Origin: Haliotis rubra
Lineage: Eukaryota
Reading direction: 5' to 3'
Length of the DNA stretch: 64,000 nt
NCBI RefSeq assembly: GCF_003918875.1
Contig: NW_025767048.1
Location: forward strand, 868,001 to 932,000
Both the position numbers and the translations under genes were made by a program. This document shows positions 258 to 57,242 of this stretch, in pieces. The notes under the pieces were generated by a model. The model was given only the letters and a program-made list of their open reading frames with translations. It was not told the origin of the DNA and did not search any database. The first letter of the stretch is position 1; the number at the start of each line of letters is the position of its first letter.

Positions 258-378
258 AGCAGCTCCTGTGTTCAATGTGTCCCCAAGTATGTGCCCTGGG
301 GTGTAAGCTGGAGGACTAGAAGAGTCTGCCTGATTTTTCTTGGGCCAAACAGCGCTGCTGCTTCTCCTCGTCTTGGTG
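258..378 (-). CDS. Cytoplasmic-tail exon of gene A with PPAY motif
   Basis: ggacag|C...GCT|gtaagt; homologous to 34420-34543, differing by a frame-preserving 3-nt indel. Confidence 0.75.
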
Positions 379-3300
379 CTGTCCAAATAAGTTCATATGA
401 TTACGTTTGATGTGGTTCAAGCTGTTTTCATCCCTTATATGGTACAGGGATGCTCATATGTAGCCCCAATGTAATACTAGTATCTGATGCCAACATGTGA
501 TACTAGTATCTGATGCCAACATCTAATACTAGTATCTGATGCCAACATGTAATACAAGTATCTGATGCCAACATCTAATACTAGTATCTGATGCCCACAT
601 GTAATATTAGTATCTGATGCCAACATCTAATACTAGTATCTGATGCATACATGTAATACTTGTATCTGATACCAACATGTAATACTAGTATCTGATGCAT
701 GCATATAATACTAGTATCTGATGCCAACATGTAATACTAGTGTATCTGATGCCAACATCTAATACTAGTATCTGATGCCAACATGTAATACTAGTGTATC
801 TGATGCATACATGTAATACTTGTATCTAATGCCAACATGTAATACTAGTATCTGATGCCAACATCTAATACTAGTATCTGATGCCAACATCTAATACTAG
901 TATCTGATGCCAACATCTAATACTAGTATCTGATGCCAACATGTAATACTAGTATCTGATGCCAACATGTAATACTAGTATCTGATGTCCACATGTAATA
1001 CTAGTATCTTATGCCAACATCTAATACTAGTATCTGATGCCAACATGTAATACTAGTATCTGATGCCAACATGTAATACTAGTATCTGATGCCAACATCT
1101 AATACTAGTATCTGATGCCAACATCTAATACTAGTATCTGATGCCAACATCTAATACTAGTATCTGATGCCAACATGTAATACTAGTATCTGATGCCAAC
1201 ATGTAATACTAGTATCTGATGCCAACATCTAATACTAGTATCTGATGCCAACATGTAATACTAGTATCTGATGCCAACATCTAATACTAGTATCTGATGC
1301 CAACATCTAATACTAGTATCTGATGCCAACATCTAATACTAGTATCTGATGCCAACATCTAATACTAGTATCTGATGCCAACATCTAATACTAGTATCTG
1401 ATGCTAACATCTGATGCTAACATCTATGTAATACTAGTATCTGATGCATACATGCAATACTTGTATCTGATGCCAACATGTAATACTAGTATCTGATGCC
1501 AACATCTAATACTAGTATCTGATGCCAACATCTAATACTAGTATCTGATGCCAACATGTAATACTAGTATCTGATGCCAACATGTAATACTAGTATCTGA
1601 TGCCAACATGTAATACTAGTATCTGATGCCAACATGTAATACTAGTATCTGATGTCAACATCTAATACTAGTATCTGATGCCAACATCTAATACTAGTAT
1701 CTGATGCCAACATCTAATACTAATATCTGATGCCAACATCTAATACTAGTATCTGATGCCAACATGTAATACTAGTATCTGATGCTAACATGTAATACTA
1801 GTATCTGATGCCAACATCTAATACTAGTATCTGATGCCAACATGTAATACTAGTATCTGATGCCAACATCTAATACTAGTATCTGATGCCCACATGTAAT
1901 GCAAGTATCTGAACCCACATGTAAAATTAGTATCTGATGCTAACATCTAATACTAGTATCTGATGCCAACATGTAATGCTAGTATCTGATGTCAACATCT
2001 AATACTAGTATCTGATGCCAACATCTAATACTAGTATCTGATGCCAACATGTAATACTAGTATCTGATGCCAACATGTAATACTAGTATCTGATGCCAAC
2101 ATGTTATACTAGTATCTGATGCCAACATCTAATACTAGTATCTGATGTCAACATGTAATACTAGTATCTGATGCCAACATCTAATACTAGTATCTGATGC
2201 CAACATCTAATAATAGTATCTGATGCCAACATCTAATACTAGTATCTGATGCCATCTAATACTAGTATCTGATGCCAACATCTAATACTAGTATCTGATG
2301 CTAACATGTAATACTGGTATCTGATGCCTAACATCTAATACTAGTATCTGATGTCAACATGTAATACTGGTATCTGATGCCAACATGTAATACTGGTATC
2401 TGATGCCAACATGTTAATACTAGTATCTGATGCCAACATCTAATACTGGTATCTGATGCCAACATGTAATACTAGTATCTGATGTCAACATCTAATAATG
2501 GTATCTGATGCCCACATGTAATACTAAGTATCTGAACCCACATGTAATACTGGTATCTGATGCTAACATCTAATACTAGTATCTGTGCATCTAATGCTAG
2601 TATCTAATGCCAACATCTAATGCTGGTATCATGCCAACATCTAATACTAGTATCTGATGCCAACATCTAATACTGGTATCTGATGCCAACATCTAATACT
2701 GGTATCTGATGCAAACTGGTATATTATGATGGTATCTGATGTCAACATCTAATACTAGTATCTGATGCCAACATCTAATACTAGTATCTGATGCTAACAT
2801 CTAACACTAGTATCTGATGTCAGCATGTAATACTAGTATCTGATGCCAACATGTTATACTAGTATCTGATGCCCACATGTAATGCAAGTATCTGAACCCA
2901 CATGTAAAATTAGTATCTGATGCTAACATCTAATACTAGTATCTGATGCCAACATGTAATGCTAGTATCTGATGTCAACATCTAATACTAGTATCTGATG
3001 CCAACATCTAATACTAGTATCTGATGCCAACATCTAATACTAGTATCTGATGCCAACATGTAATAATAGTATCTGATGCCAACATGTTATACTAGTATCT
3101 GATGCCAACATCTAATACTAGTATCTGATGTCAACATGTAATACTAGTATCTGATGCCAACATCTAATACTAGTATCTGATGCCAACATCTAACAATAGT
3201 ATCTGATGCCAACATCTAATACTAGTATCTAATGCCAACATCTAATACTAGTATCCAACATCTAATACTAGTATCTGATGCCAACATCTAATACTAGTAT

Positions 3301-6300
3301 CTGATGCTAACATGTAATACTCTTATCTGATGCCAACATCTAATACTAGTATCTGATGTCAACATGTAATACTAGTATCTGATGCCAACATGTAATACTA
3401 GTATCTGATGCCAACATGTTATACTAGTATCTGATGCCAACATCTAATACTAGTATCTGATGCCCACATGTAATACTAGTATCTGATGTCAACATCTAAC
3501 AATAGTATCTGATGCCCACATGTAATATAAGTATCTGAACCCACATGTTAAAACTAGTATCTGATGCTAACATCTAATACTAGTATCCAACATCTAATAC
3601 TAGTATCTAATGCCAACATCTAATACTAGTATCCAACATCTAATACTAGTATCTGATGCCAACATCTAATACTAGTATCTGATGCCAACATCTAATACTA
3701 GTATCTGATGCCAACATGTTATGATAGTATCTGATGTCAACATCTAATACTAGTATCTGATGCCAACATCTAATACTAGTATCTGATGCTAACATCTAAT
3801 ACTAGTATCTGATGCCAACATGTAATACTAGTATCTGATGCCAACATGTTATACTAGTATCTGATGCCAACATATAATACTAGTATCTGATGCCCACATG
3901 TAATACTAGTATCTAATGCCAACATCTAATACTAGTTTCTGATGCCAACATGTAATACTAGTATCTGGTGCCCACATGTAATACTAGTATCTAATGCCAA
4001 CATCTAATACTAGTATCTGATGCCAACATCTAATACTAGTATCTGATGTCAACATGTAATACTAGTATCTGATGTCAACATGTAATACTAGTATCTGATG
4101 CCAACATGTAATACTAGTATCTGATGCCCACATGTAATACTAGTATCTAATGCCAACATCTAATACTAGTATCTGATGCCAACATGTAATACTAGTATCT
4201 GCTGCCAACATGTAATACTAGTATCTGATGCCAACATGTAATACTAGTATCTGATGTCAACATCTAATACTTGTATGCAACATCTAATACTAGTATCTGA
4301 TGCCAACATCTAATGCTAGTATCCAACATCTAATACTAGTATCTGATGCCAACATGTAATACTAGTATCTGATGCCAACATCTAATACTAGTATCTGATG
4401 CCAACATGTAATACTCGTATCTGATGCCAACATCTAATACTAGTATCTGATGCCAACATCTAATACTAGTATCTGATGCCCACATGTAATACTAGTATCT
4501 AATGCCAACATCTAATACTAGTATCTGATCCCAACATGTAATACTTGTATCTGATGCCAACATGTAATACTAGTATCTGATGCCAAACTCTAATACTAGT
4601 ATCTGATGCCAACATGTAATACTAGTATCTGATGCCAACATGTAATACTAGTATCTGATGCCAACATCTAATACTAGTATCTGATGCCAACATGTAATAC
4701 TAGTATCTGATGCCCACATGTTATACTAGTATCTGATGCCAACATCTAATACTAGTATCTGATGCCAACATCTAATACTAGTATCTGATGCCAACATGTA
4801 ATACTAGTATCTGATGCCCAACATCTAATACTAGTATCTGATGCCAACATCTAATACTAGTATCTGATGCACATCTAATACTAGTATCTGATGCCAACAT
4901 GTAATACTGGTATCTGATGCCAACATGTAATAATACTAGTATCTGATGCCAACATCTAATACTAGTATCTGATGCCAACATGTAATACTAGTATCTGATG
5001 CCAACATCTAATACTAGTATCTGATGCCAACATGTAATACTAGTATCTGATGCCAACATCTAATACTAGTATCTGATGCCAACATGTAATACTCGTATCT
5101 GATGCCAACATCTAATACTAGTATCTGATGCCAACATCTAATACTAGTATCTGATGCCAACATCTAATACTAGTATCTGATGCCCACATGTAATACTAGT
5201 ATCTAATGCCAACATCTAATACTAGTATCTGATGCCAACATCTAATACTAGTATCTGATGCCAACATGTAATACTAGTGTCTGATGCCAACATCTAATAC
5301 TAGTATCTGGTGCCAACATGTAATACTAGTATCTGGTGTCCACATGTAATACTAGTATCTAATGCCAACATCTAATACTAGTATCTGATGCCAACATCTA
5401 ATACTAGTATCTGATGTCAACATGTAATACTAGTATCTGATGCCAACATCTAATACTAGTATCTGATGCCAACATGTAATACTAGTATCTGATGCCAACA
5501 TGTAATACTAGTGTCTGATGCCCACATGTAATACTAGTGTCTAATGCCAACATCTAATACTAGTATCTGATGCCAACATCTAATACTAGTATCTGATGCC
5601 AACATGTAATACTAGTATCTGGTGCCAACATGTAATACTAGTATCTGATGCCAACATCTAATACTAGTATCCGATGCCAACATCTAATACTAGTATCTGA
5701 TGCCAACATGTAATACTAGTATCTGATGCCAACATCTAATACTAGTATCTGATGCCAACATGTAATACTAGTATCTGATGCCAACATCTAATACTAGTAT
5801 CTGATGCCAACATCTAATACTAGTATCCAACATCTAATACTAGTATCTGATGCCAACATCTAATACTAGTATCTGATGCCAACATCTAATACTAGTATCT
5901 GATGCCAACATCTAATACTAGTATCTGATGCCAACATCTAATACTAGTATCCAACATCTAATACTGGTATCTGATGCCAACATCTAATACTGGTATCTGA
6001 TGCCAACATCTAATACTAGTATCTGATGTCAACATGTAATACTAGTATCTGATGCCAACATGTAATACTAGTATCTGATGCCAACATCTAATACTGGTAT
6101 CTGATGCCAACATGTAATACTAGTATCTGATGTCCACATCTAATACTAGTATCTAATGCCAACATCTAATACTAGTATCTGATGCCAACATCTAATACTA
6201 GTATCTGATGCCAACATCTAGCACTAGTATCTGATGCCGATATGTAATACTAGTATCTGATGCCCACATGTAATAATTTCTGATGGAAAATCAACATGCA

Positions 6301-9300
6301 TATTTCTATTTTACTACCTACGTGAAAACGTTGAGACCTATGAGTGATATCGTTCTCAGAGCTTCAAATGGATGTGGGCGTTGAGTCATGCAACAGATGG
6401 GGTCATTCTTATCTATCATATCGACCTGCTTACAGTGATAACAGCTTTGATCATGACGGTAAGATATTTAGCATGATGCTAATGGAGTTGTTAATTACCG
6501 GACTTGTTTGTTTCCGTTACTGCTTGTCAACATACTACTCACATATCGTAGATTTGTTATCAATTGTTTGTGATTACCCTTTAACCCTGCAAACCACCAC
6601 AATCACCACGGCGATCAGCACCAGAGCAGACACGGTAGAAAGCACAATAACCAGCGTAGTGTTTGGGGAATCTGTAAACCAAGTAAGTAACAATCTTCAC
6701 AAAGTATATTCCGGTATTTCTTACTACGTGCTGGTTACAATTAAGGTATATTAACTGACAGACATTTACAAACAAAAGGACCACTAAATTTTATTCTTTT
6801 GGACTTCAATCAGTATTGGGAGAAAGATAAGATATTTCTCGGGCTTACCCTCTGCAGCAGAATCCCGAGCAGGATGGTCATCATCTTAAAGAAATGAACG
6901 TACAATGAGTGGGTAAATGCTTCATTTAAGTATCGTTAAAGCTAATGTTTATGCAGTCTTTGTGGAATGGCAGTCTGTTTCTTAAACTTGCTTATTCCCT
7001 CAGCTTTACAAACTGCAAACAACACAGAATACAGCTGCTCGCATTGTTCCAGATTATATAACTCCTATTCTCAAATCCCTACACTGGCTTCTAATTGATG
7101 TGAAATTGGGTTTTACGTCGTGCTTGAGAATATTTCATTCATATGACGATGCACATGCATGTGTATGTGTATGTGCGGCTGCTTGTACTAGCTTAAGCTG
7201 GTTTTATAGTGCTAGCCCACTGAGATACCATGCCTCAGTGAAGCATGAATACCCCACTCAGACACATTATACTGACTCCGAGCCGATCAGTCCTTGCTGT
7301 ACCCATTAATGCCGAACGCCAGGCAGGGACCAACAAGTACCATATTTTAACGTCTTTTTTGACGCGGTCGGGGATCGAACCCGTGACCTTCCGATCTCCG
7401 GGCAGACGCTCTAACCACTACACCACGGAGGCGGTTGGCTTTTTATTGAATATCGTATTGATGCTCCTCTGTATTGTCAACAAGTGTCTACACAATCTCG
7501 CGCCAGCTCAACTCAAGGATCTCATCCCAGAATTCACTCCAACCAGAACTCTTCGTTCCCATAACCAGCTCTTGTTAACAGTCCCCAAGATCTTTCCGAC
7601 ATGCAGCTCCACATCTGTCAAATTCCCAACTGTCAACATTAAACTTTCTGACGCTCACACAGCTTTCAAATCTCATTTGAAAAACTTTCTCAAGAGCAGT
7701 TATTACTAACTCTTCAAACCAACCATGTATATGTATTGTATATTATCCTCTGATTATTGTAGCGCCATGAGCATGCACAAGTGCATGAATACAGGCGCAG
7801 GCTACATGTCCATTAATATCATTATTTATTATTACTTACCAACGTGCACATCACAGTTTTTCCCAGTCCAACCGCTTCCACAGATACAGTCGTACCTGTC
7901 CAGACCATCCACACATGTGCCGCCATTCTGACACGGGCCGCTCCTACACGACTCGGCGACTGGAAACAGCACAGGATATATGTGAGAGGTGCATTATATC
8001 AGATATGAAGAGATACGTACACTTAGAAAATGTTGATGTCATCGACTAGATAAAATGTCTGGAATACGGGAGCATTACAATATCATGAATGATAACAACG
8101 CAATGCAAGTCAATGAACTTCAACGGCAGAGATTCCGGATTGAAACAAGACCCAACTAACCCAAGATCTTCTTCAAACACGACAAATATACATGTATGGG
8201 GGTTAATAGGCTTCGTGATTATTTTGAATGTATGTTATCCATCCCTACAAGCTTCGACCCGCGATGAAGAGATACATACACTTAGAAAATGTTGATGTCA
8301 TCGACTAGATAAAATGTCTGGAATACGGGAGCATTACAATATCATGAATGATAACAACGCAATGCAAGTCAATGAACTTCAACGGCAGAGATTCCGGATT
8401 GAAACAAGACCCAACTAACCCAAGATCTTCTTCAAACACGACAAATATACATGTATGGGGGTTAATAGGCTTCGTGATTATTTTGAATGTATGTTATCCA
8501 TCCCTACAAGCTTCGACCCGCGACGATCCGGGTTAAAATTGATCTTCAGCAACCCATGCTTGTCGTTAGAGGCGACTTACAGGATCGTGTGGTCAGGCTC
8601 GCTGACTGGGTTGACACATGTCATCGTATCCCAATTGTGTAGAACGATGTTCATGTTGTTGATCACTGAATTGTCTGGTCCAGACTCGATTATCTACAGA
8701 CCGCCGCCATATAGCTGGAATATTGCTGAGTGCAGCGTTAAACAACAGCCAAACAAAACCAATCATGTTATTTGTGTGGTGGTATGTGGTTGGAGACGGA
8801 CTGTGGAATATTGCCGAGTGCGTCATTAAGCAAGCAAGCAACCAACCAAACTAGAATCTTCATTATAGCTATACTGAAACCCAGTAATCAGAACTATATT
8901 CATATCTAACACAGCTTTATGCTATACATACAGATACATCTTGGTGTGGAAAGACTCCAGCCTCCGTTAACCATACATGTTCTCTCATAGGGACCGGTCA
9001 GGTTAAAGCTGGTGTCACATGTGTAGGTGATGACGTCATTATACTGGAACCTTCCCCCGTGTACTTTTCCGTGTGGAATGGACACTGGCTTGGCGCAGGT
9101 CAATACTGAAAAGAAAACGAGTCAACCTTTACGCAGCACGAATGTAATTTTATTATATGGCAGTATTCGTCCTATTATACTAAACATCTTGTGCGATGAA
9201 CATATGCTTTCATCTTTGTATTTCTTTCATTCATATTAGATTCAGGCTTTGACGCCTGACTGACTGAGTTTAGTTTTAGTGTTATTCCAGTAACATCACG

Positions 9301-9956
9301 GCGGGGGACACCAGAAATGGGCTTCACACATTGTGCCCATGTGGGGATTCGAGCCCGGGTCTTCGGCGTGACGAGCCAACGCTTTAACCATTAGGCTACC
9401 CCACCGCCCCTCAGGCTTTGAGAAGACTAGCAACGAGTAACATACAAAATATCTTCGGCAACCCATGCTCGAAGGATCGCTTGATGCATGTCACTGGATT
9501 GTCTGACTCGATGATTTTTGGTGTTATAAAACTGGAACATTGCCGAGTTAAACAACAAACAAAACTGGACTACCTCGAATACTAGTAAACACCATTGTTC
9601 TTGACGGTATGTGTTACATGTTTAGATGAGGTATAATACTTACTGCTGTCACAGCATTCTCCATATCTTCCCAGAGGACAGGAGCATCCATATCCATTAT
9701 AGTGACCTGTATCACAGTGTTTGTTGCAGTCCCTTCTTTCAGAAGCCCCATTTCCTCCGTCGCAGGATTCAAATGTCCCACATTCTGGCGTGTCGAGAAC
9801 ATTCACCAGCCTCTCGCGTATCTGTCCACCATAACATCTACTCGAGCAATTCGACCAGGCCTGCCAAGTCAACCAGTTGCATCCACAACTGTCCCATGTA
9901 TCGGTTCTCTGGCATGTCGTGATAGGAATGACGGCGACCAAGATCAACCACAGCAT
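258..9956 (-). CDS. Gene A: chimeric small type-I membrane protein (signal-TSP1-EGF-like / CCP / EGF / linker / TM / PPxY tail); last exon probably left of the window
   Basis: Exons 9956-9644 (MLWLILVAVIPITTC.., WxxWxxWxxCS), 9105-8932 (sushi, 174 bp), 7959-7840 (EGF ..CRSGPCQNGGTCVDG..), 6884-6849 (36 bp), 6671-6578 (DSPNTTLVIVLSTVSALVLIAVVIVVVCRVKG), 378-258 (TKTRR..SPPAYTPG..). All introns GT-AG with phases 1,1,1,1,2 joining in one frame: 858 nt, no stop. Confidence 0.8.
470..6274. repeat. 26-bp tandem satellite/minisatellite, about 220 units, consensus TAATACTAGTATCTGATGCCAACAT(C/G)
   Basis: Directly visible continuous array with no spacers; intronic in gene A. Confidence 0.98.
6578..6671 (-). 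CDS. Transmembrane exon of gene A
   Basis: tttacag|ATTCCC...AAAGG|gtaatc; hydrophobic stretch of about 21 residues followed by R/K; same 94-bp size as gene D exon 34972-35065. Confidence 0.85.
6990..7833 (+). mobile_element. 3' remnant of L2/CR1-group LINE, interrupted by a SINE
   Basis: Translated remnants QNTAARIV..ITPILKSLHWL and NKCLHNLAP..PTRTLRS..LLTVPK; (ATT)-type tail ending at about 7833. Confidence 0.65.
7100..7437 (-). mobile_element. tRNA-derived SINE (Meta-domain-like core)
   Basis: Minus strand begins with A box gtggtgtagtggttaga and B box gggttcgatcccc, followed by a conserved-looking core. Confidence 0.65.
8005..8522. repeat. 259-bp near-identical tandem duplication in a gene A intron
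   Basis: ORFs at 8089 and 8348 are near-identical and offset by 259 bp; single copy in B and C introns. Confidence 0.9.
8526..8760 (+). mobile_element. SINE family 2 (about 240 bp); other copies/fragments about 9455-9560, 13270-13400(-), 20913-21158, 26603-26780, 37005-37090(-), 40960-41125, 55245-55450(-)
   Basis: Dispersed ccgggttagaattgatcttcagcaacccatgcttgtcg...cagaccgccgccatatagctggaatattgctgagtgc with short simple-repeat tail. Confidence 0.85.
9259..9410 (-). mobile_element. tRNA-derived SINE family 1 (about 170 bp); other copies about 14279-14440, 14957-15120, 15160-15270(-), 24890-25040, 30711-30860, 36055-36220, 37870-38030(-), 56240-56360, 56870-57000(-)
   Basis: gggcggtggggtagcctagtggttaaagcg...gggttcgattcc (A/B boxes)...gaagcccatttctggtgtcccc...(actc/agtc)n tail. 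Confidence 0.9.
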
Positions 9957-10381
9957 GGTTACACCTGTAAAGAACTGGTAATGGTAAATCGTAATGTCGA
10001 TGCTTCTCTGCGTGCCTTTATATTCAAGCTGATAAGAGTTGGCAAGCTTTCAAAGTTAAACAGGGATATTACTCGCTGTTCCGTTGTTCCTCTGTGTGAA
10101 TTTTACGATCAAGGACCCACAAGTGCGTGAGTCAAAACACTGACTTCAATTTTCCTACAATCAAAATGTAACTTCTGTATGTCACAAGGATTTCAAGCCT
10201 TTGTGTCCAAAGACCATTATTACGTTGCCAAGAGTTGTTTGATCAGGGTTACAGCCTTAAGGCCTTTATACAGCTATCAAGGCCTAAATACATCTTTCAC
10301 ACCGTTTCATTGGGGATATGCAGACAAATTTAACGAAAAAGTCTATCCCGTGTATTTTCACTTCTGCAAAATATGGCAATA

Positions 10382-11426
10382 CACTCGTTAAAAAAATTCT
10401 TTCCATCCGTCATCTTTGTGTGATTGTAAACAGCTTCAGCGCCAAAACGTGTTTTTTCATGTTTTAGAAGCGTTTGAAGAACTATTCGCCAATACGTCAC
10501 CAATACAACATGCGATATTGGTCACTATAAAAAGGCAAACGTTGTGTTTGATTTTGTCATTTGTTTGCGCCTGGGAAAGAGGAAATCATCATGCCACAAC
10601 TGTGTGTCGCCAATTGAAACATCGCCATAGGCCGCCTTGAAGCTGGGGAGTCGCAGATTGCAGTTACCCGACATTTCAAGGTTCGTCAGAGCAGCATATC
10701 TCGCCTTTTGAATCCTTTCCTGCAGACCAATTCCGCCCAAGATCGCCCGAGAAGCGGCCGTCCAAGAGTTACTACCCAAGCCCAGGACCGCTCACTTGCG
10801 TCATCGTCTTGCCACAGCCGTGGAGACTGCACAACCCATCCCTGGTTTGAGAAGAATTTTCGACCAAATTGTCAGGAATCGAAGTGTGAAGTGGGGATTC
10901 GACCAAGAAGGCCAGTTGTCGCCCCTGTTTTGAAAGACTTCCATCGGCGCAATCGCTTGCGGTGGTGTTGTAAAGTCCTGAACTGGAACCTTAGAAACTG
11001 GAGGCGAGTCTGGTTCACGATTCATGAATCACGATGTCTACTTCGCAGGCGAGATGGAAGACAATGTGTTTACTGACGGAGAAATAAACGTTTTGTCCCT
11101 AAATGCATTCGACAGGTTGACAGATTCGATGGAGGCATTGTCATGGTGTGAGGTGATATATCCAGCACACAAAGGTTTGATTTAGTGGTGGTTCAGGGGA
11201 TTTTGACAGCAAATCGGTACATCAGCAAAGTCCTTGCACGTCACATGGTTCCGTTTATGGACCGACAGAGGGAGTTGTTCCACTCGTCATGGTCCGCTGC
11301 CTTGCCAATTCTAACGTCAGTGTCTTACCATGGCCTCTTTACCATTGAAATTACATGAAATAATTGCTCTTAAACTAACGCAATAAATTCTTCTATAAAA
11401 TGGCTTATGCGTTTCTTTTACGAGTG
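10382..11426 (+). mobile_element. Defective Tc1/mariner DNA transposon
   Basis: TA-flanked inverted ends CACTCGT(T)AAAAA; transposase remnants RPRSGRPRVTT, WRRVWF..ES; frameshifted. Confidence 0.85.
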
Positions 11427-12440
11427 TATGTCCCCATGAACTCTTGACTTGTTTGTGCCTGCATGGGTGCCACTATGTGATAATGGTTTATGAACACATC
11501 GTTAGAATCGAACAATATATTCGTGTTATTGTTTAAATTATAGAATTTACACAGCCACGCGAAGGCAGAATATACCGACATTCTGCCTCTGAGCCTTTCT
11601 ATACTAGTATATCATGTAACACTGCAATATCAATTGCATTTATGTTACTTTAGTTATAAATACATATATCATAATAAATATGGTGGGACGTTTACAGGTA
11701 ACGTAGTGTATATGCAGATCGATGTACAATGAAACCCAAATATAATCGTCAGGATTAATATATTCATTTTGTATTCACGTAAGCGTTGCTAGTTGTAATC
11801 CTCCAAATGGTGAGCGTTCGATTGAACAGAATTAGGTATAACCGTTACGAGATTTCACACTTATAACTGTCTTTGAACGTAAGACAGAAACCCTCTTAAA
11901 TCAGATTGGTTGTGAAGTGGTGGAACCTTAACCCTGCTTGCCGTAAATGATTTCATTGTTTTAAATAACAAGGTGGAAAGGTTATCAGCTATTACGCTAA
12001 AGTTTTCATGGGAACATCTTACCATATATTGTACAAGTGAAAATACACCCGACAGACTTTTTCGGTAAATTCGTCTACATATCCCCAATGAAACGGTGTG
12101 AAATATGCATTGAGGCTTTGAAAGTTGTATTAAGGACTTACATTTGTATTAAAGCCTTGAAAGCTGCATTAAGGCCTTAAGGATGTAACTCTGATCAAAC
12201 AACTCTTGGCAACGTAATAATGGTCTTTGGCCACAAAAGGCTTAAAATCCTTGTGACATACAGAAGTTACAGGAAGTAGGAAAATTAAAGTCAGTCTTTT
12301 TGTCTCAAGCACTTGTGCGTCCTTGATGGCAAAATTCACACAGAGGAACAACGGAACAGCGAGTAGTATCCCTGTTTAGTCTTGAAAGCTTGCCAACTCT
12401 TATCAGCTTGAATACAAGGACGTGGGCGACAAGTCTTCTA

Positions 12441-15400
12441 TGCCAGAGAACCGATACATGGGACAGTTGTGGATGCAACTGGTTGACTTGGCAGGCCTGG
12501 TCGAATTGCTCGAGTAGATGTTATGGTGGACAGATACGCGAGAGGCTGGTGAATGTTCTCGACACGCCAGAATGTGGGACATTTGAACCCTGCGACGGAG
12601 GAAATGGGGCTTATGAAAGATGGGACTGCAACAAACACTGTGATGCAGGTCGCTATAATGGATATGGATGCTCCTGTCCTCTGGGAAGATATGGAGAATG
12701 CTGTGACAGCAGTAAGTATCACCTCATCTAAACATGTTACACATACCGTCAAGAACAGTGGCGCCTATACCAGGTAGCGAATTTAAATCAAGTTTTGTTT
12801 GTGGTTTAACTCATGACGTCAATCTGTATATAATCGAGTCAGACAAACCAGTGACATGCAAGTGAGTCAGCGATCCTGCGAGCGTGGGTTGCTGAAGAGT
12901 TTATCAACGTTACTCGTTGCTGCTCTTCTCAAAGGCATATGTTCATCGCACATTTTTAAGAGAAAAGTACTAAAGAACGAAAACTGCAATATAATAGAAT
13001 TACATTCGTGCTGCGTAAAGGTTGACTCGTTTTCTTTTAAGTTGTTACCTGTGCCAGGCCAGTGTCCATTCCACACGGAAACGTTCACGGGGGAAGGTTC
13101 CAGTATAATGACGTCATCACCTACACATGTGACACCAGCTTTAACCTGACAGGTCCCAACTAGAGGACCTGCATGGTTAACGGAGGCTGGAGTCGTTCTA
13201 CACCAAGATCTCTCTGTACGTATATCATTAAGCTGTGTTAGATATGAAAATAGTTGTGATTACTGGGTTGTTTGTTTAACGCCGAACTCAGCAATATTCC
13301 AGCTATATGACGCCAGTCTGTAAATAATCGATTATGGGCCAGGCAATCCAGTGATCAACAGCATGAGCATCGATCTACACAACTTGGTGTCAACCAAGTC
13401 ACCATATGTACACAACTTGGTGTCAACCAAGTCGCGGGTCGAAGCTTGTAGGGATGGATGACATTTAATCTACATGATCACGAAGCCTATTAACCCCCAT
13501 ACACGTATATTTGCCGTGTTTGAAGTAGATCTTGGGTTAGTTGGGACATGTTTGAATCCGGAAGCGTTGAAGTGCATCGACTTGTATTGCGTTGTTATCA
13601 TTCATGATATTGTAATGCCCCCGTAGTCGAGACTTTTTATCTAGTCGATGGTATCAACATTTTCTAAAGTGTACGTATGTCTTCATATCTGATATAATGC
13701 ACCTCTCACATACACCCTGTGCTGTTTCCAGTCGCCGAGTCGTGTAAGAGTGGTCCGTGTCAGAATGGTGGCACATGTGTGGATGGTCTGGACAGGTACG
13801 ACTGTGTCTGTGGAAGCGGCTGGACTGGGAAAAACTGTGATGTGGGTACGTTTAAGAAAACCATAAGCGCGAACATTTATACTGCATGATTCCCGATGTG
13901 GAAATAACCAGTTTATGTTCGTTTCAGATGTGCAAGCTCCAGTGGTTGACCAGTGTCCTCCTAGTGTTCGTTTGACTACTTCATCTCGTGAGATGACCTA
14001 CACATGGACAATTCCAGTCTTCTCTGATCCCCATGGCAACCTTGTGAAAACATTCTCTGATTATGACAGTAACACTTTCACCTTCCCCTGGGGAGACTTC
14101 ACCGTCCTCTATACTGCAGTGAAACCTAGCAACGGCCTTGAGACGAACTGCAGCTTCACAGTCAGCGTTAGACGTAAGGCCGCTTGTCGAATCGTTCGAC
14201 CCCAAGTGGCACTGGTCATAGATGTACATGTCCCAATCACTTACAAACTATCAACGATTGTGATGTTCATCTTGAACAGGGAGCAGTGGGGTAGCCTAGT
14301 GGTTAAAGCGTTCGCTTGTCACGCCGAAGACCCGGCTTGGATTCCCCACATGGGTTCAATGTGTGAAGCCCATTTCTGGTGTCCCCGCCGTGATATTGCT
14401 GCAATATTGCTAAAAGCGGTGTGACCTCACTTACTCATCTTGCACACACGACTTAACAGAAAGTAACAATAGTATGATATTAAGTGATTTGTCCTGTCAG
14501 AAAAGACACAACCTACAGTGATAATTTTATCAATGTGATTATTATTTCATTGTCATCACTCTTTTCTTGTCTGTTCCTTTTCATGGGACATGAAATATAC
14601 AATATATGTATTTATGTTCCGGATACAGCCAAACCGTGTCCACCCACTGTTGCCCCGAGCAACGGTTACGTCCTGTGTAACGGATGGAGAGCAGACTATG
14701 GGCAGTACTGTCTAGTTGGGTGCAACGCGAAGTACTCTCTCCCACGCAGTTTTGACGCGAGACAGTGGCTAGTGTGTGGCGCAAGTGGACACTGGGCTCC
14801 AGATTCTATTCCATTACGATGCAAAGGTGAGTGACACGATTTTCTACATGTGATTTATTCTCTTTTTCTATGTATTATTCCGTCATATTTGAAAGCACTA
14901 AACACACAATAATATTTTAAATGAATACAGTCACTTGCCAAATGATTAACAATGGTAGGCGGTGGGGTAGCCTAGTGGTTAAAGCGTTTGCTCGTCACGC
15001 CGAAGACCCGGGTTCGAATCCCCACATTGGTACAATGTATGAAGCCCATTTCTGGTGTCCCTCGCCGTGATGTTGCTGGAATATTGCTAAACGCGGCGTA
15101 AAAACAAACTCAGTCAGTCAGTTTAGGATCAAAACCACAATACGCCTTCTATTTAATATGGTTTTACGCCCTTTTCAGTAACATTATGCAATATCCTGGA
15201 CACCTGAAATGGGCTTTTCAATGTAACCATCTGGGGAATCGAACCAGGGTCTTCGGCGTGACGAGCGCTACTGGCGCGTTAAAGATATTAGCAGGTTGTG
15301 TTGTATTCGTTCCTGCATTATGATTGCTTCTTTTATACAGTCGGAGATGCAGGTGACCATGCTGTGGTAAAGCCTGGAGACTGTCTCAGCGGGACTCACA

Positions 15401-15513
15401 AACAAAAGGAAGACTACATCCATGCTCTCAAACGGTCGTCTTTCAACTCTGTGTGCACTGACAACCATACTATCTGCTCCCCTGACAATGTCAATGTTGT
15501 ATGCGGGGCATAG
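12441..15513 (+). pseudogene. Gene B: pseudogene copy of secreted TSP1-EGF-CCP-EGF-HYR-CCP protein
   Basis: Exons about 12441-12711, 13042-13215, 13732-13845, 13928-14173, 14629-14826, 15341-15513; AATAAA 15662. Acceptor, ATG and signal peptide are deleted relative to A and C; in-frame TAG at 13161-13163 (GAG in A and C); last sushi Cys changed to Ser. Confidence 0.85.
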
Positions 15514-31369: not shown

Positions 31370-34300
31370 CTACTCAGTTGTCACATCCGACTGTGGGGGA
31401 ATCTTCACAGGAGACATGCTTGAGTCCGGCGGTGACTGGGCCGTTTGAAGGGGATACCACTGAAGCCATTTGAATTCGACATCATTTACATAATTTCATT
31501 ATGTACATAGGTTTCAGAAGGTTAGGTTATATATTCATCACCAAAAAGTATCAACGGGGTAATGTTATATAATCTGACCCACTATCTGTAGTTACATTCA
31601 TACTTTCCCTACCATGGTGGGCGAGCTGTCCCAGGGGTGTCGGCCCGGGAAAGCGAAATTTCAATATTCCATATTCCCGGTAAAGCGAAAACAAAGTTGT
31701 GCTAGAAGTGCCGCGAATTGCTATGAAAACATCGGATAACCGTACATCAGATTAGCGCGCGACCCCAATACTCGATCTGTTAGCCGCTTAACTGAGATGA
31801 AGTTTCAGTTGTTTCAAGTTTCAGCACGTACGTGGCCCTACTTAACTCTAGTTTTATTAATTCATGTAATGAATTATGATCCTGGCCGAATTTGTCAAAG
31901 TTACGTCAACTTTTTTCAAGGAACATACCTACCCTTATCTATCTACAGCAAGCTTGAGGTGCCGGGATCGAGTCCACCTGTTACCGGGTGTGAAAACCTT
32001 GGAGTCAACTTTGTGTGCAGACTCTCTCAGTGTTGTCACAAGCCCTAGTGTACAGTTCACAACCCCGTTCACTTAATAGAACCCACGAATCTGTTGGTAT
32101 ATGACCAGATGGTGGCCACATGAATACGTGCAAACACATCATTGCTGGTACAACAACGTGCAGTAAACTTGGACAAAGTACTGTGACTATGTGTCCCAGT
32201 CCACCCAGATGTGAATGGGTACCACGTTGGGATGGGAAAGCCACAATAACTCGGTGCACCTAATGGCTGCAAGAGTTGTATAATACCCAGGCGGTTGAGA
32301 CTGATAATACGATGTGCCGTTGAGATTGACATCCAATGATCGAAGGAAAAAAACAAGCGCCTTGAGCATGCACTAGTGGCGTGGATATGTGCGTTATATA
32401 AATATCCTATAATAATAATCATGAAATTGGCTGAACGAATACGCCGCAAAGAATGCCTACATAATTCTATTCCATGTGCGTAATGTTCACAACCCGAAGG
32501 ATAAATTATTGAACAAAAATTATACAAATCGACACAAACAATCCAATGAAGTTAATAGTCGCGATATAGTTGGCGTTTGGCATATTTGCGGTTTCTCAAT
32601 ACACTGAAATAATGGAATTGCTGCTTATTAAGTATTAATCGGTCTCACAGTCACTCAACCACATCATTTTCTCTTGAACCCGGGCTTTTCTGCAATGCTT
32701 AAACCCAAAATGAAGCAAGTCTGGTTTCAGAATCATCTCAATATTGACTGGGGCGCCTTTTCCATATAAAATGTTTTTTTTGTTTCTACCAAAGTAATAT
32801 AAACTAGCCACATTAAGAAACTGTGCATTGTCAAAATATTATCCCAGTTGATAGGTACGATAACAATGTCAAAGGTACATATAAACTTTAATGGAGGAAT
32901 CATGGGACCATAACAAGTCGGGAGAATTTCAATTGAAAAGTCAATCACAATGACGTCACGAGTCCACAAGCGGGACAGGGGTCAAACGACCATGTCACAA
33001 GCTAAATAACGGGTATGTCCACCATCGGCATTGAGAACAGCAGTGCATCGACGACGCATAGAGCCTATCAAACGTGCAAGAAAGGCTTGTGGGATGTCAC
33101 GCCAGATTCTCTCAAGTTCTGTTGCAAGGTCAAGGACGTTATCTGGCGGATGAGGAAGACGGCGTAGACGTCGATCCATCTCGTCCCAAACATGCTCTAT
33201 CAGGGAGAGATCCGGTGAATGTGCAGGCCAAGGCAGTAAGTCAACGTTGTGGTGTTGCAAGAAATCCATAGCAACCCTTGCCGTATGAGGGCGGGCATTG
33301 TCCTGTTGGAATGTTAACCCAGGGCCATGACGTTGCAGAAAAGGAATTGCCACAGGTCGAAGAATCTGATCCCTGTAGCCCACACCAGTTAAGTTGCCCT
33401 GAACAATCACCAAAGGAGTTCTTTGGCGTGCTGTTATTCCACCCCAAATCATCACGGAACCACCACCAAAGCGATTCCTCTCCAAGACACAGGCCTGTGC
33501 ATAACGTTCTCCCACGCGTCTACAGGCACGTTGACGTCCATCACTATGGGAAATGTTAAACCTGGACTCATCTGTTAAAACAACATTTCTCCACCAAAAC
33601 AAGGGTCTGCGGACATGATTTCTGGGCACCACATTCGGCGAGCTTGTCGATGACGTTGTGTCAGGATAGGCCGTATGGCGGGACGTCGTGGTCTGATCCC
33701 ATGATGACGTAAACGTTGTCGAACTGTGTTGGGGTGGATACGGCGAAGTCCTGGGATGGTTCGAGCAGTCATCACTGCAGTCTGAAACCTGTGGCGAAGA
33801 TGGGTCACCCTTATCCATCTGTCCTGTCTTGGCGCTGTTACACGTGGACGTCCAGAACGTGGCCGATGGATGACGTCATTTGTGTTCTGGTAGGGTCTCA
33901 CCAGTGCAGAAATGGTGTTCCGGTGGCAGTGGAAATGTGCAGCCACTTGTCGTTGAGACATCCCCCCACGGACCATCCCGATGGCCTCATGACGTTGTGC
34001 AGACGTGAGCCTTGGCATGCTATGCGTTTCAATAGCCGTTTAATTTTTTGAACGATCGCAAGGGCAGGGGTTGAGCTTTCCAAAGTGACAATATTGTGTG
34101 GCATTCATTTGCTCTGTTTATCTTTCCCGGAATGCACGTGCAACAACGTATTGCACGTCTCAAGGACGAACCCACTGACGTCACGGAACGTGGACATGTT
34201 GGATACATGTCACTAATCTCTGAGTTTAAATCCTTATGTGTCTACACAGGTTTGATAAATTTAGATTTTAAATTTTTGCATGCACAGTTTCTTTATGTGC

Positions 34301-37300
34301 CTAGTATATATACTGTATTTCAAAGACTAAGCGTTAGTCTACGTGAGAATCTACCTCCTCACCCCCTACCTCACTCACCAACTACCCCAACCCAGCCCCA
34401 CACTGGGGTGTCTACTTACAGGAGCACCTATGTTGCATGTGTCGTCAAGTATGTTCCCGGGAGTGTATGGTGGAGGACTAGGAGAACAGTCTGCCTTGTA
34501 TTTCTTGGGCCAAAGAGCGCTGCCGCTTCTCTTCACCTTGGTGCTGTCCGAATAAGATCATATGATCACATGAGATGTGGTTCAAGCTATTTCAATCCCT
34601 TATACAATACAAGCATACTCACGTGTAGTCCGCTTGTATAGTACTAGCATCTAATGCCAACATGTCATACTAGTATCTGATGCCCATATGTTATACTCTG
34701 TTGCAACCAAACGTAACATCAACATCCAGATTTTCCTACCCAAGCGAAAACGTTTAGACCTTTCGGTGATATCGTTCTCAGAGCTTCAAATGGCTGTGGG
34801 CGTGGATTCATGCCACAGATGTCTTTCTTACCTTATCAGCCTGCTAAAGGATGATAACAGCTTTGGTCATGACGGCAAGACATTTAGCCTGATGCTAATG
34901 AAGTTCTTAATTACCCGACTTGTTTGTCAACATAGTACACACATATCGAAGATTTGCTAGTAATTGATTACCCTTTAACTTTGAAAGGCACCACAATCAC
35001 CACGATGATCAACACCAGAGCAGACAGTGTAGGAAGCACTATAACCAGTGCAGTGTTTGGGGAATCTGTAAACCAAGTAAAGTATATTCCGGTATTTCTT
35101 ACTACATGCTGGTTACACTTAAATTATATCAACTGACAGATAGACCACTGAATGAGATTTTATTCTCTCGGACTTTCATCAGTACTTGGAGAAAGATGAG
35201 CTATTTCTCGGGCTTACCATCTGCAGCAGAATCAGGAGGAGAATGGCCACCATCTTAAAGAAATAAACGTACAGTGAACTAAATTGGGTATATGTTTCTT
35301 TTTAGTAGCGTTAACATTAATATTATCTGAGAGGAAAGTCGTCAACCCTCTTGCTGCCTAAATTCATGTACTGCATATTCCATCAGTATGGCAGATTTTT
35401 ACAACTGTCTGCTCCATAACTCCCTTAAGTGGCTTTTAGAAGCTAGTATGATGAAGTGGAACTGACTGACTGACTGAGTTTAGTTTTACGCCGCTTTTAG
35501 CAATATTCCAGCAATATCACGGCGGGGGACACCAGAAATGGGCTTAACACATTGTGCCCATGTGTGGAATCGAACCCTGGTCTTCGGCGTGACGAGCCAA
35601 CGCTTTAACCACTAGGCTACCCCACCGCCCCGATGAAGTGGAACACTTTTTGTGGATAGACAACTTCTTTGTTTCAGTAGTAGCAACTACTACTGCAACA
35701 AAGAAGTTGTCTATCCATAAAAAGTGTTCCACTTTGTCTGCTCCATGTCTGTCGAATCCATGAATCCTTTGTAATTTCCTTTGAAATCTTGTCTTGTAAT
35801 GTTCATCAACCATCTGATATAATGAAAAGCCTGTCTCACAGAACTTACGTTTCTTGCCTGGAGTTAGTAAGTGAGAGTTGAACAGTCTTTAAGTTATATG
35901 ATATTGACGTAGGTCATAGATGTCACGAACACAGATACAAGTACATACACAGAACGCAAATACATGTAAGTACACAGAATACAGCTACATACTCACTGTC
36001 TGACCAAATACGGGATTCCAACCGAAGGATCCTACAAAGGAGCCTTGAACATACGGGACGGTGGGGTAGCCTACTGGTTAAAGCGTTCGCTCGTCACGCC
36101 GAAGACCCGGGTTCGATTCCCCACGTGGGTACAATGTGTTAAGCCAATTTCTGGTGTCCCCCGCCGTGATATTGCTGGAGTATTGCTAAAAGCGGCGTAA
36201 AACTAAACTCACTCACTAACTCGACCAATACCCCTTTCATAAACATATGTTTTTTACACATACCTGTACTGCAATCACTTGCAGATGTTGCTCCTAAACC
36301 TGGAGTTGTCGTTCCTGACGGACATAGGGTACATGCGACGCTGGCAGGACGGTCTTGGTAGGAACCTTTCCCGCACAGGACACACACGCTGTTGTCCTCT
36401 CTCGTCCCAGCAGGACATTCACCTATACAGTACAATATGTATACAACTACTCATTACTAGAATACTGCAGCATAAATCAGAGCATTCTACTTGATTTGCC
36501 CTCAGGTCGTAAGTATATGTTAGCTCAAGTAACAACATAATATAGAGAAATAACTGTTGTTGCTATTGTGCTAATTAACTTCTGAAGAGTGTCAGACTAC
36601 TTTTTGTTATGTACTCTGTCTATGCGTTGTAATAATTTTCCCCTGTGCCAATGGACAATATGTCAGTGATGACTGATTCTGACTGAGAATTATATGAGTA
36701 TACATGCAAAGGCCGTGTGGTAGATTTCGACTAAAAGACACCGGAAGTGTACATCGACGCCTACTCTTCAATCAAGTCTCGTCCTACCACAAAGCCCAGC
36801 AGCTTCTGTAGGCACAGTTCCAGGTGGGCAGTTGATGTGCACATCCGTGGTTCCACTGTTGGGATCCACCGTGTACGTCCTGCCTCCCAGGGTCACTGTG
36901 AATATCGTATTGCTGTTGTTGACCAGCTGCTGGGCGGATATCTCGAACGTGGACACATCAGTGAAGTATGTCTTCAGCTGCCCGGAACCTATAGCGTTAA
37001 AGAGTGAGTGAGTTTAGTTTTACGCCACACTCAGCAATGTTCCAGCTACATGGCGGCGGTCTGTAAATAATCGAGTGCACCAGACAATCCACTGATGAGT
37101 TGAAGAGACTTGGACAAGATGGACACATCAACATGTCAGGAGGGGAAAGGTTAATGCAGGTTTTGGATGGAACCACAATAGATCGGGCTAATATGGGGTT
37201 TGATCGACAATGATATGATACTGGCATGCCTGGGAGTCGATTGTCCATACCGATGCCATTACATAGACACTGGCATCTGGATTATATCAAGAAATATTAC

Positions 37301-53765: not shown

Positions 53766-56700
53766 ATGCTGTGGTTGATCTTGATCGCCGTCATTCCTAT
53801 CACTACATGCCAGAGAGCCGACACATGGGACAGTTGTGGATGCTACTGGGAGACATGGCAGGCCTGGTCGAAGTGCTCCAGTAGATGTTATGGCAGACAG
53901 ATACGTGAGAGGAGGGGTGTTTGTTGACACCAGACCAGAATGTGGGACATTTGAATCCTGCGACAGAGGAAATGGGGGTTGGGACAGAAGAGACTGCAAC
54001 AAACACTGTGATGCAGGTCGCTACAATGGGCAAGGATGCTCCTGTCCTCTGGGAAGATATGGAGAATGCTGTGACAGCAGTAAGTATCACCTCATCTAAA
54101 CATGTAACACATACCCTCAAGAACAATGGCGCCTATACCAGGTAGCGAGCTTATGTTTTGTTTTGTTTTGCTTGTTGTTTAATTCCGCAATATTCCAGTT
54201 TTATGACGACAGTCTGTAACTAATCGAGTCAGACAATCCATAGGAATGCATCAAGTCAGCGATCCTGTTTACGTATGTTTCTAGTTGCTGCTCTTCTCAA
54301 AGCCTATCTATCTATCTGTCAAAAGTACAAAGGTACGAAAACTGCAATATAACAGAATTACATTCGTGCTGCGTAATGTTTGACTCGTTTTCTCTTTAGT
54401 AACGACCTGCGCCAGACCAGTGTCTATTCCATACGGAAACGTTCACGGGGGGAAGGTTCCAGTATAATGACGTCATCACCTACACGTGTGACACCAACTA
54501 TAACCTGACCGGTTCCTACGAGAGGACCTGCATGGTTAACGGAGGCTGGAGTCGTTCTACACCAAGATGTCTCTGTATGTATAGCATTAAGCTGTGTTAT
54601 ATTTAGAGAATAACCCAAGAGGTACCAGTGATGACAGGAAATATGTCCCTCGTGAAATTAATAAATGAATAAAAAATCATCTTGCAGTATCGTTCGATAT
54701 CATTTCCGGCTACACTTTTAGTGTACACCTTGCAAGTTCTATTTCACCATGTTTAGTCTCTTTCACATGTACACGCGAAAGGAATTTAGTGGATGTATTA
54801 TTCTCGTTCCACGTCCAGCAATGAATACGTCCACCTTGACCAGGTCATTGACGTTGATTGCAGTTAACTGGGTAGCCTTGTTTGTTTACAAAATACGGTT
54901 AGACATTTTTTTACTATAAAACACGTTGTTAAGTAAACGACGTCATATTGTTAATGACGTATGAAATGAAGCATTAAATAAGCATCAAAATCGAAAACCT
55001 GTATGTTTCTTGTTGATATTTTAAAATCTCGAATCACTGTGATTACATTATTATTATTATTATTAAATTAGTTCCGGCATCCAATAAAAATGTACAAATA
55101 TACGATCGACCAAACAACGTCGAGAATCAATAAATTGCACATTGTGCAACTATCAAAAAGATATTACACGGGGTCTCCTCGCCCGTTTGGGTAATAAATG
55201 AAAATAATCATGATTGCTGCATTTAATTATAGCTGTGATGAAGGTTTGTTGTTTAACGCCACATTCAGCAATATTCAAGCTATATGACGGCGGTGTGTAA
55301 ATAATCTGGACCAGACAACCCAGTGATCAATAGCATGAGCATCATTATACACAATTGGGATACAATGACATGTTTCAACCACCCGATCTCGTTAGTCGCC
55401 TTTTACGACAAACATGGCCCGGGTTGCTGAAGACCAGTTCTAATCTAATCTTAACGAGTCGAAGCTTTTACATGTAGGTATGGATGACATGCACTCAACA
55501 AAACTACGATTCCTGAAACCCGGATACATACAAGATCTTGGTTTAGCTGGGACTTGTTGGAATCCGGAATCTCTGCCGTTGAAGTGCATTGACTTGCATT
55601 GTGTTGTTATCCTTCATGATATTGTAATGTTCCTGTAGTCGAGACATTTTATCAGCATTTTCTGAAGTGTATGCATTTCTTCATATCTGATATAATGCAC
55701 CTCTCACATATGCCCTGTTCTGTTTCCAGTCGCCGAGTCGTGTAGGAGCGGCCCGTGTCAGAATGGCGGCACATGTGTGGATGGTCTGGCCAGGTACGAC
55801 TGTGTCTGTGGAAGCGGCTGGACTGGGAAAAACTGTGATGTGGGTAAGTAGGTTTAAGAAACAGACTGCTATTCCACAAAAACTGCATAAGCATTAGCAT
55901 TGAAACCATACTCGTTAACACAGGTAAACTGCCTTTAGCATAATTGCTAATGTTCGTTTCAGATGTGCAAGCTCCAGTGGTTGACCAGTGTCCTTCTAGT
56001 GTCCGTTTGACTACTTCATCTCGTGAGATGACCTACACATGGACAGTTCCTGTCTTCTCTGATCCCCATGGCAACCCCGTGAAAACGTCCTCTGATTATG
56101 ATAGCAACAATTTTACTTTCCCCTGGGGAGACTTCACCGTCCTCTACACTGCAGTGAAACCCAGCAACGGCCTTGAGACGAACTGCAGCTTTACAATCAG
56201 TGTCAGACGTAAGGCCGCTTGTTGAATTGGTCATAGATGTATCACGCCGAAGACCTGGGTTCGATTCCCAACATGGGTAAAATATGTGAAGCCCATTTCT
56301 GGTGTCCCCCGCCGTGATATTACTGGACTATTGCTTAAAGCGGCGTAAAACTAATTCACTGATCTTGCAACAGAAAGTAACAATAGTCTGATATTAAGTG
56401 ATCTGTCCTGACAGCCAACAGTGATAATTGTATCAATGTAATTATTATTTCAATGTCTTCGATCTTTCTTATCTTTTCTTTTCATGGGATACATATACAA
56501 CGTATGTATTTATGTTCCGGGTACAGCCAAACCGTGTCCACCCATCGTTGCCCCGAGCGACGGTTACGTCCTGTGTAACGGATGGAGAGCAGACTATGGG
56601 CAGTACTGTCTCGTTGGATGCAACGCGAACTACTCTCTCCCACGCAGTTTTGACGCGAGACAGTGGCTAGTGTGTGGCGCAAGTGGACACTGGGCTCCAG

Positions 56701-57242
56701 ATTTGTTTCCACTACGATGCAAAGGTGAGTGACACGAATTGTATATTCTCGTCAGTCACATTTTATTAAACACACAAGAATATTTTAAATTACCACAGTG
56801 ACTTACCATATAGTTTACAATGTTATATGTCCAGGATTAGAATCACAATACGCCTTATATGTAGTATGATTTTACGCCGTTTTAACCATATTCCATCAGA
56901 ATCATGGCGGGGGTCACCAGAAATGGGCTTCACACATTGCACCCATATGGGGATTCGAACCCGGGTCTTCGAGCGAACACTTTAATCGCTGGGCTGCTGC
57001 CACGTTAATGATATTAGCAGATTGTGTTCTATTCATACATGCATTATGATTGCTTCTTATTTTTCACAGTCGGAGATGCAGGTGGCCATGTGGTGTTGAC
57101 GCCTGGAGACTGTCTCAGCGGGACTCACAAGCAAAAGGAAGACTTCATCCATGCTCTCAAACGGTCGCCTTTCAACTCTGTGTGCATTGACAACCCTACT
57201 ATCTGCTCCCCTGACAATGTCAATGTTGTATGCGGGGCATAG
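53766..57242 (+). CDS. Gene C: secreted signal-TSP1-EGF-like / CCP / EGF / HYR / CCP / half SEA-like protein (about 405 aa if two +1 G frameshifts are errors, otherwise a pseudogene)
   Basis: Exons 53766-54079, 54400-54574, 55730-55843, 55963-56208, 56527-56724, 57070-57242. Exons 1 and 2 are each 1 nt longer than in A, from an extra G at 53914-53917 and 54447-54452. Confidence 0.75.
54600..55197. mobile_element. About 600-bp insertion unique to a C intron, probable non-autonomous transposon
   Basis: Absent from homologous A and B introns; weak inverted ends (atttag..aataaccc / gggtaataaat). Confidence 0.5.

Follow-up and report, generated by a model that had tools for sequence, protein, structure and literature searches.

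How can a gene for a secreted protein acquire a membrane anchor, and is the event still readable in the DNA around it? A 64,000-nt stretch of the genome of the blacklip abalone, Haliotis rubra (hereafter the window; source contig QXJH01000371.1, assembly GCA_003918875.1) raises this question, for it contains a minus-strand gene, A, whose 5′ exons resemble those of two neighbouring secreted-type genes, B and C, and whose 3′ exons resemble the end of a large gene, D. An original prediction, made from the window's letters, proposed that a secreted ectodomain had been put onto a D-type membrane anchor; homology and synteny uphold both this origin and its direction. We consider it fairly probable that A is a real, lineage-specific chimeric gene of H. 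rubra (present also under an organism label that is ~2% diverged) that arose and is used in the way described below.

Outside Drosophila, plants and primates, clear-cut cases of exon shuffling are seldom found. The A locus keeps both parents, a nucleotide-level breakpoint, the intron phases and a plausible repair mechanism in readable form. The change from secreted to membrane topology is a step of the kind by which animal extracellular proteins are proposed to have evolved their modular make-up and, if A is expressed, the locus records a dated, testable birth of a receptor in a rapidly duplicating and decaying mollusc gene cluster.

Gene A encodes a predicted type I membrane protein

Gene A has six exons within the window, with AG/GT borders and phases 1, 1, 1, 1 and 2, which encode 286 amino acids (aa) free of stop codons. 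Exon 1 (9644..9956, ATG at 9956) encodes a hydrophobic signal peptide and a Cys-rich TSP1-like module (its match to Pfam TSP1_spondin is weak, E 0.006, under the cut-off) and ends in phase 1. Exon 2 (8932..9105, phase 1-1) encodes a Sushi/CCP domain (Pfam Sushi, E 7e-13), with 90% nucleotide identity to B 13041-13214 and to C, and exon 3 (7840..7959, phase 1-1) encodes an EGF domain (Pfam EGF, E 8e-10). Exon 4 (6849..6884, phase 1-1) is a 12-codon linker homologous to D 35253-35218, from which it differs at 7 of 36 nucleotides and 6 of 12 residues. Exon 5 (6578..6671, homologue D 35065-34972) encodes a transmembrane (TM) helix followed by a basic stop-transfer stretch, and exon 6 (258..378, homologue D 34543-34420) a cytoplasmic tail with a PPxY motif, the motif class that binds WW domains; it reads PPAY in A (314-303) and PPPY in D.

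The original extent of the gene, 258-9956, was right at the start codon, 9956. Position 258 is not the gene's end: a GT splice donor follows at 257-256, and a seventh and last exon of 31 codons plus TAG lies beyond the window edge, ~423-518 nt to the left of window position 1. Its coordinates are 20380-20475 in locus L001, which comprises gene A with its flanks and in which position x corresponds to window position 19957 - x. The D homologue of this exon (31459-31370) has an identical stop and a nearly identical start of the 3′ untranslated region (UTR).

A HMMER search with exon 1 (104 residues) returned residues 1-104 of XP_046578193.1 (P0001) at 100% identity. This 317-aa H. rubra protein is an NCBI Gnomon model whose splice junctions are exactly those that we deduced for A. 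Its RefSeq name, 'neurogenic locus notch homolog protein 1-like', is misleading and reflects EGF similarity only. An assignment to Notch was rejected, as the protein has one EGF and no LNR or ANK match in Pfam; the Pfam matches of P0001 are Sushi and EGF only. The signal-peptide region (residues 1-15) has a mean hydropathy of 2.37, and the protein contains a single strong hydrophobic segment (residues 221-241, 19-residue Kyte-Doolittle maximum 3.15) that is followed by RVKGTKTRR. With an N-terminal signal peptide and one helix with basic residues after it, A has the predicted features of a type I single-pass protein. The full-length product is predicted to comprise 317 aa: a signal peptide, a TSP1-like/Sushi/EGF ectodomain, one TM helix and an 80-aa cytoplasmic tail. 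We use the word receptor for it by inference only.

A joins two parental blocks within an intron

Self-BLAST of the window resolved A into two blocks. The 5′ block (7847-10379) matches B 13844-12019 at 87-91% and C 55842-53432 at 73-89%, both in inverted orientation. The 3′ block matches the end of D in the same orientation and with introns included (6219-6939 to D 34639-35314 at 77%; 152-530 to D 34319-34697 at 79%; 77-83% overall), and the D-like homology reaches ~690 nt beyond the left window edge, matching D down to 31196. By these alignments the promoter region and exons 1-3 of A are an inverted paralogous copy of a neighbouring secreted Sushi-EGF-HYR gene, and its last four exons with their introns are a paralogue of a D-type 3′ end. 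Both assignments, of the first three exons to inverted B/C copies and of the linker, TM and tail exons to the end of D, had been made from the window alone and are borne out. The 5′ flank of A (9957..10379, minus strand), made up of the inverted proximal promoter of the secreted gene and the outer part of the A arm, is 86% identical to B 12417-12019, 79% to C 53821-53432 and, over ~220 nt, 77% to a Haliotis asinina locus (L004).

The switch between the blocks, which we call J1, can be placed to within a few nucleotides. The C intron directly after the EGF exon (55845-55912) aligns to A 6994-6929, with 87% identity over A 6994-6941, and in a four-way alignment A follows C up to the GC at 6942-6941 and D from the AACG at 6937-6934. 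Between them lies J1, the TTT at 6938-6940; the shared bases there amount to 2-3 nt of microhomology (TT/TTT), and the linker exon follows 53 nt downstream. Since the C-like intron resumes at 6994-6941, the ~840 nt at 6995..7834 are an insertion relative to C, by alignment a later one into C-like intron sequence. The original placement of the switch, within ~6950-7846 and in an L2 remnant, was off by a small distance, and the repeat did not mediate the join.

The two parental introns, intron 3 of B/C and the one that precedes the linker exon in D, are both in phase 1, and the D exon upstream of the breakpoint intron, an Ephrin_rec_like exon, ends in phase 1. Because the D-side exon end and B/C intron 3 share this phase, the fusion reads through. 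In the alignment with B and C, the exon 3 donor of A (GTAAGT, 7839-7834) is shifted 6 nt downstream relative to theirs, so that on this detail, as on the in-frame, stop-free phase-1 join, the exon model and the alignment agree with what was first read from the sequence.

Short reads span the junction

Inverted duplications are a known long-read artefact, and a chimeric or fold-back read, or a mis-merge of assemblies, could in principle have created the join. The H. rubra assembly is a Nanopore/Illumina hybrid meta-assembly of a genome with 1.3-1.4% heterozygosity, for which several assemblies were merged and RNA-seq was used in scaffolding (PMC6774278). Even so, J1 is bridged by short-read contigs of two runs that differ in study and in organism label. 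An 880-nt contig from run X1, probably of the source animal, covers 6300-7125 with 0 differences and spans J1. A 672-nt contig from run X4, of another study and another organism label (organism B, ~2% diverged), also spans J1, covering 6728-7091, then 7443-7609 and then 7648-7783. As these contigs bridge it, J1 exists in two organisms together with most of the intron 3 insert; J1 is real DNA. The inverted arms, moreover, differ by 12%, by indels and by private transposon insertions. A fold-back read would give near-identical arms, which excludes such an artefact. For J2 (11998-11999), the junction between the loop and the B arm, the support is the assembly alone. An artefactual join is very improbable on this evidence.

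The secreted architecture is older

Secreted proteins of 405-429 aa with the module order signal peptide, Cys-rich, Sushi, EGF, HYR, second sushi-like and C-terminal Cys are found in H. asinina, H. cracherodii, H. rufescens and distant molluscs, annotated as 'sushi, nidogen and EGF-like domain-containing protein 1' or 'SRPX-like'. On these comparisons the six-exon secreted architecture is old and widespread among molluscs. From the signal peptide to EGF, A is 73-78% identical to Haliotis members of the family (P0092, P0093 and P0118), and the intron positions and phases are identical. A differs from them in what follows: the HYR module (matched by Pfam in P0093), the second sushi-like module and the C-terminal Cys module of the secreted Sushi-EGF-HYR layout, which has no TM, are absent, and a linker, TM helix and tail stand in their place.

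We compared four syntenic loci from three other Haliotis species (L002, H. cracherodii; L003, H. rufescens; L004 and L005, H. asinina; the stretches end inside D genes). All four have the order [D(-)][secreted(+)][E(+)], with D head to head with the secreted gene, a D-type protein of ~1,400-1,530 aa and an E-type protein of ~1,490 aa, and none of the four contains an A-type gene. A search with the whole of P0001 among 5.8 billion proteins, limited to 0.55-1.75x the query length, returned no other protein that covers both its N-terminus and its tail. Because the four syntenic loci lack an A-type gene and no other protein has A's combination, the A architecture is derived within the annotated genomes compared.

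The opposite polarity, in which a membrane-anchored A is ancestral and the secreted B and C are derived, could appeal to A's having the cleanest reading frame among the copies in the assembly. It is already contradicted, and we give it next to no credence: besides the six-exon secreted proteins of other Haliotis and distant molluscs and the four loci without A, the 3′ half of A, introns included, is a paralogue of the D 3′ end, and the C-like intron of A reaches 6941, where the corresponding B/C intron continues into the HYR exon. In the library of papers that was searched, none links Haliotis with chimeric genes or exon shuffling.

In H. asinina, two complete tandem [D][secreted][E] triads lie 72 kb apart on CM074533.1, at 21.69 and 21.76 Mb; the two secreted proteins share at least 90% identity.

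Inverted arms and the proposed origin of A

The A arm reaches 11445 and the B arm begins at 12000. The single-copy loop of 552 nt between them (11446..11997) runs collinear with the A arm, its C-equivalents descending from 53338 to 52903; J2 lies at 11998-11999. Read from left to right in C-equivalents, the locus consists of a D-like 3′ end, J1 and a segment descending from 55912 to 52903, which takes in exons 3-1, the promoter, a Tc1-like element and the loop, followed to the right of J2 by one ascending from ~53339 through B on to 62336. Inverted arms with a single-copy spacer contiguous with one arm are the arrangement expected of a fold-back. Compared with the other species and with unit 2 of the cluster, which holds D and C, the stretch from J1 to the loop lacks the body of a D-type paralogue; against unit 2 the missing gene body would amount to 17 kb at least, and a former complete paralogue, D′, is presumed.

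The A arm also contains a Tc1/mariner-like element (10380..11427) with 18-nt terminal inverted repeats (TIRs; CACTCGT...), a TA duplication and a decayed transposase open reading frame (ORF), whose match to HTH_Tnp_Tc3_2 is weak (E 0.002). A transposase-induced break at this element was considered and rejected: the TIRs are intact, the TA duplication is present and arm homology continues for 18 nt beyond, which makes the element a simple insertion of later date. A motif related to it is found at 33821-33898.

The Jukes-Cantor distance between the 3′ half of A and the D introns is 0.18 and that between the A and B arms 0.12, and the A-C and B-C flanks differ by ~25%. The larger distances to D and C fit an order in which a unit duplication preceded the inverted duplication. 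Exon 1 of A and B (9644-9915 and 12440-12710) differs at only 5 of 272 sites, as against 13-20% in the neighbouring introns and ~10% in exons 2-3, which suggests recent gene conversion between the inverted arms at exon 1. The copy relationships are mosaic, with exon 1 grouping A and B, and with intron 1 and exons 2-3 placing B nearer to C than to A. This rules out a simple two-step dating and leaves the rough order alone, unit duplication before inverted duplication.

We propose the following origin. The cluster would once have held a second [D][secreted][E] unit in tandem, [D′][B][E′], which is plausible because H. asinina carries tandem triads. A break ~860 nt upstream of the secreted gene of this second copy may have been repaired by fold-back or template-switch synthesis, in which ~3 kb were copied in reverse and a 552-nt single-copy loop was left. 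Microhomology of 2-3 nt would then have joined the inverted arm to the D-type paralogue within its last large intron, removing a gene body of at least 17 kb; the identical outcome would follow from two replicative template switches. The product would most likely stand under the promoter of the secreted gene and present its three N-terminal modules at the cell surface.

A bolder reading, improbable on present evidence, is that A is a functional neo-receptor, in which the recognition modules of the D-type receptor's usual secreted partner are carried on the receptor's own stalk, anchor and PPxY tail. If so, a soluble partner would have become a cell-autonomous, membrane-tethered form, and A would have replaced both of its parents in unit 1, where B is dead and D′ deleted.

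Expression and selection

Is A expressed and maintained, or is it a genuine rearrangement that happens to retain an ORF, untranscribed or drifting, and annotated by the chaining of homologous exons? We compared the coding sequence with several neutral expectations. In a neutral simulation since the A/B split (~0.06 substitutions/site), the ORF, the ATG and 12 splice sites all survived in a fraction of 0.02, counting substitutions only. Intron indels occur at 0.017-0.02 (0.0195) events per nt, and 9 of 11 are not multiples of three; A has zero frameshifting indels in 954 nt. The A-D exon alignment contains two indels, both multiples of 3, where the intron rates predict ~7, most of them frameshifting. 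With H. cracherodii and H. rufescens as outgroups, the changes assigned to the A branch in exons 1-3 comprise 4 nonsynonymous against 5 synonymous (binomial p 0.049 against a 3:1 expectation), and all Cys residues are kept. The PPxY and C-terminal motifs, the stop codon and the beginning of the 3′UTR are common to A and D, and A has kept the proximal promoter, whose conservation extends to H. asinina. These observations count against a gene that has no function.

Exon differences between X4 and X1 were tried as orthologous substitutions and discarded. Most of them equal the B or C state (H85R, T83A, D183A) and on that ground represent paralogue cross-mapping; they were dropped from the dN/dS estimates.

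Several observations weigh on the other side. Among the sequencing runs that match the locus, none is on record as RNA, and the contigs from X1, X4, X7 and X15 are DNA-like, with repeat-driven joints only and no splice joint. Over the four 3′ exons the dN/dS of A against D is 0.89 (dN 0.18, dS 0.20) and exon divergence equals intron divergence, from which the tail sequence is barely constrained on at least one lineage. In organism B (X4) the linker-exon donor (6843-6848) has degraded from GTAAGC to GTTATC; as the linker exon is symmetric (phase 1-1), skipping it would preserve the frame. The protein cluster of P0001 has one member, whose sole source is genome annotation. The sister copy B is decaying, and the introns of A bear a heavy load of repeats, having gained a 5.8-kb minisatellite, a composite repeat, a 259-nt tandem duplication and a short interspersed element (SINE). 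The selection tests themselves are blurred by the A-B gene conversion at exon 1, intron indel rates probably overestimate the neutral rate in exons, and the one-time complete D′ on which the proposed origin draws is inferred from comparison.

Taken with these points, the evidence for selection on A is suggestive only. That A is an expressed and maintained membrane protein is a moderately probable conclusion from its sequence; we hold a functionless A to be unlikely, if by no means negligible.

Relation to known systems

Gene A itself is already known, as a RefSeq entry, and so is the class of mechanism, duplication combined with illegitimate joining within compatible introns. The new elements are the reconstruction of A's origin and the change of topology from secreted to membrane-anchored. 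Chimeric genes formed by duplication with illegitimate recombination have been described in Drosophila, among them an X-linked testis gene (PMC1463047) and the tandem-duplication chimeras of D. yakuba (PMC5460883). The Drosophila chimeras, like A, are young and lineage-restricted and combine parts of two neighbouring or duplicated parental genes. One parent supplied the promoter and 5′ exons, the other the 3′ exons, and the breakpoint is non-coding, with little or no homology. A differs in that its 5′ part is an inverted duplicate, that the body of the paralogue was deleted and that a secreted protein was turned into a type I membrane protein. Transcript data are available for the Drosophila chimeras, whereas A is known here from DNA alone.

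In human fold-back inverted duplications, one arm runs directly into a single-copy spacer, a deletion lies next to the duplication, and the junctions contain 2-8 nt of microhomology or small insertions (PMC3907307). The A locus is similar, with arms of ~2.5-3 kb, a spacer of 552 nt, a putative deletion of at least 17 kb and 2-3 nt of microhomology at J1. The human events are megabase-scale, terminal and pathogenic. The A locus differs in being interstitial and of kilobase scale; it is also old, its arms being 12% diverged, and fixed or common.

Vertebrates have single-pass Sushi proteins with PPxY tails, such as SUSD4, a type I protein with a small CCP ectodomain; PPxY motifs of this kind in the cytoplasm serve to recruit WW-domain proteins, NEDD4-family ligases among them. 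The likeness of A to SUSD4-type proteins is architectural only, and a sequence relationship was neither found nor sought.

Neighbouring genes B, C and D

Gene B with its short upstream arm (12000..15510, plus strand) represents the direct copy, a secreted-type gene in decay. In place of ~90 nt that included the ATG and signal peptide it has 22 unrelated nt (12418-12439), and the Sushi exon (13041-13214) carries E145stop and C161S. Exons 4-6, for the HYR, sushi-like and C-terminal modules, are present, and the RefSeq model, XP_046578194.1, is truncated at 262 aa. Because the ATG and signal peptide are lost and these two lesions have been added, B is by its sequence clearly dead.

Gene C (53766..57242, plus strand) is the syntenic secreted-type gene, with six exons. 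It has two +1 G frameshifts, in exons 1 and 2, located in G-runs (GGGG and GGGGGG; 53905-53920 and 54445-54460), and the extra Gs are absent from A, B and H. cracherodii. As they are single Gs in G-runs of a Nanopore-hybrid assembly, the frameshifts may be assembly errors, in which case C would be an intact secreted gene. The view that A is the only lesion-free gene here consequently stands with respect to B and is doubtful with respect to C.

The 3′ end of gene D (31370..36422, minus strand) is the paralogue of the 3′ half of A. It comprises an Ephrin_rec_like exon (36422-36264, ending in phase 1), the linker exon (35253-35218), the TM exon (35065-34972), the tail exon with PPPY (34543-34420) and the last exon (31459-31370). 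A furin site, RRKR, lies within a further D exon (37888-37562).

Between B and the 3′ end of D, two EGF-like coding segments without an obvious surrounding gene occur on the plus strand at 25679-25894; they may be a remnant of the unit 1 E-type paralogue.

Insertions and repeats within A

The insert in intron 3 has no match in a Pfam search and contains a nested 351-nt element (7092-7442) with a read depth of ~10^6. The organism B contig joins 7091 directly to 7443, and also lacks 7610-7647; the 351-nt element is younger or polymorphic. A second copy (89%) lies ~1.2-1.6 kb to the left of the window, at L001 21170-21519. Most of intron 5 is occupied by a 26-nt minisatellite of ~224 units (472..6275), the D counterpart of which has ~2 units (34639-34697).

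A SINE-like repeat of ~160 nt with a tRNA-like head is present at 9256-9410, 14958-15122, 35465-35631, 36054-36221 and many other positions and reaches a depth of up to 10^7 in all runs; ARAGORN called no tRNA gene in this repeat and found no tRNA-like gene over 6900-10500. In intron 2 of A (8005-8523), a 259-nt segment is tandemly duplicated with 99% identity and is single copy in B and C.

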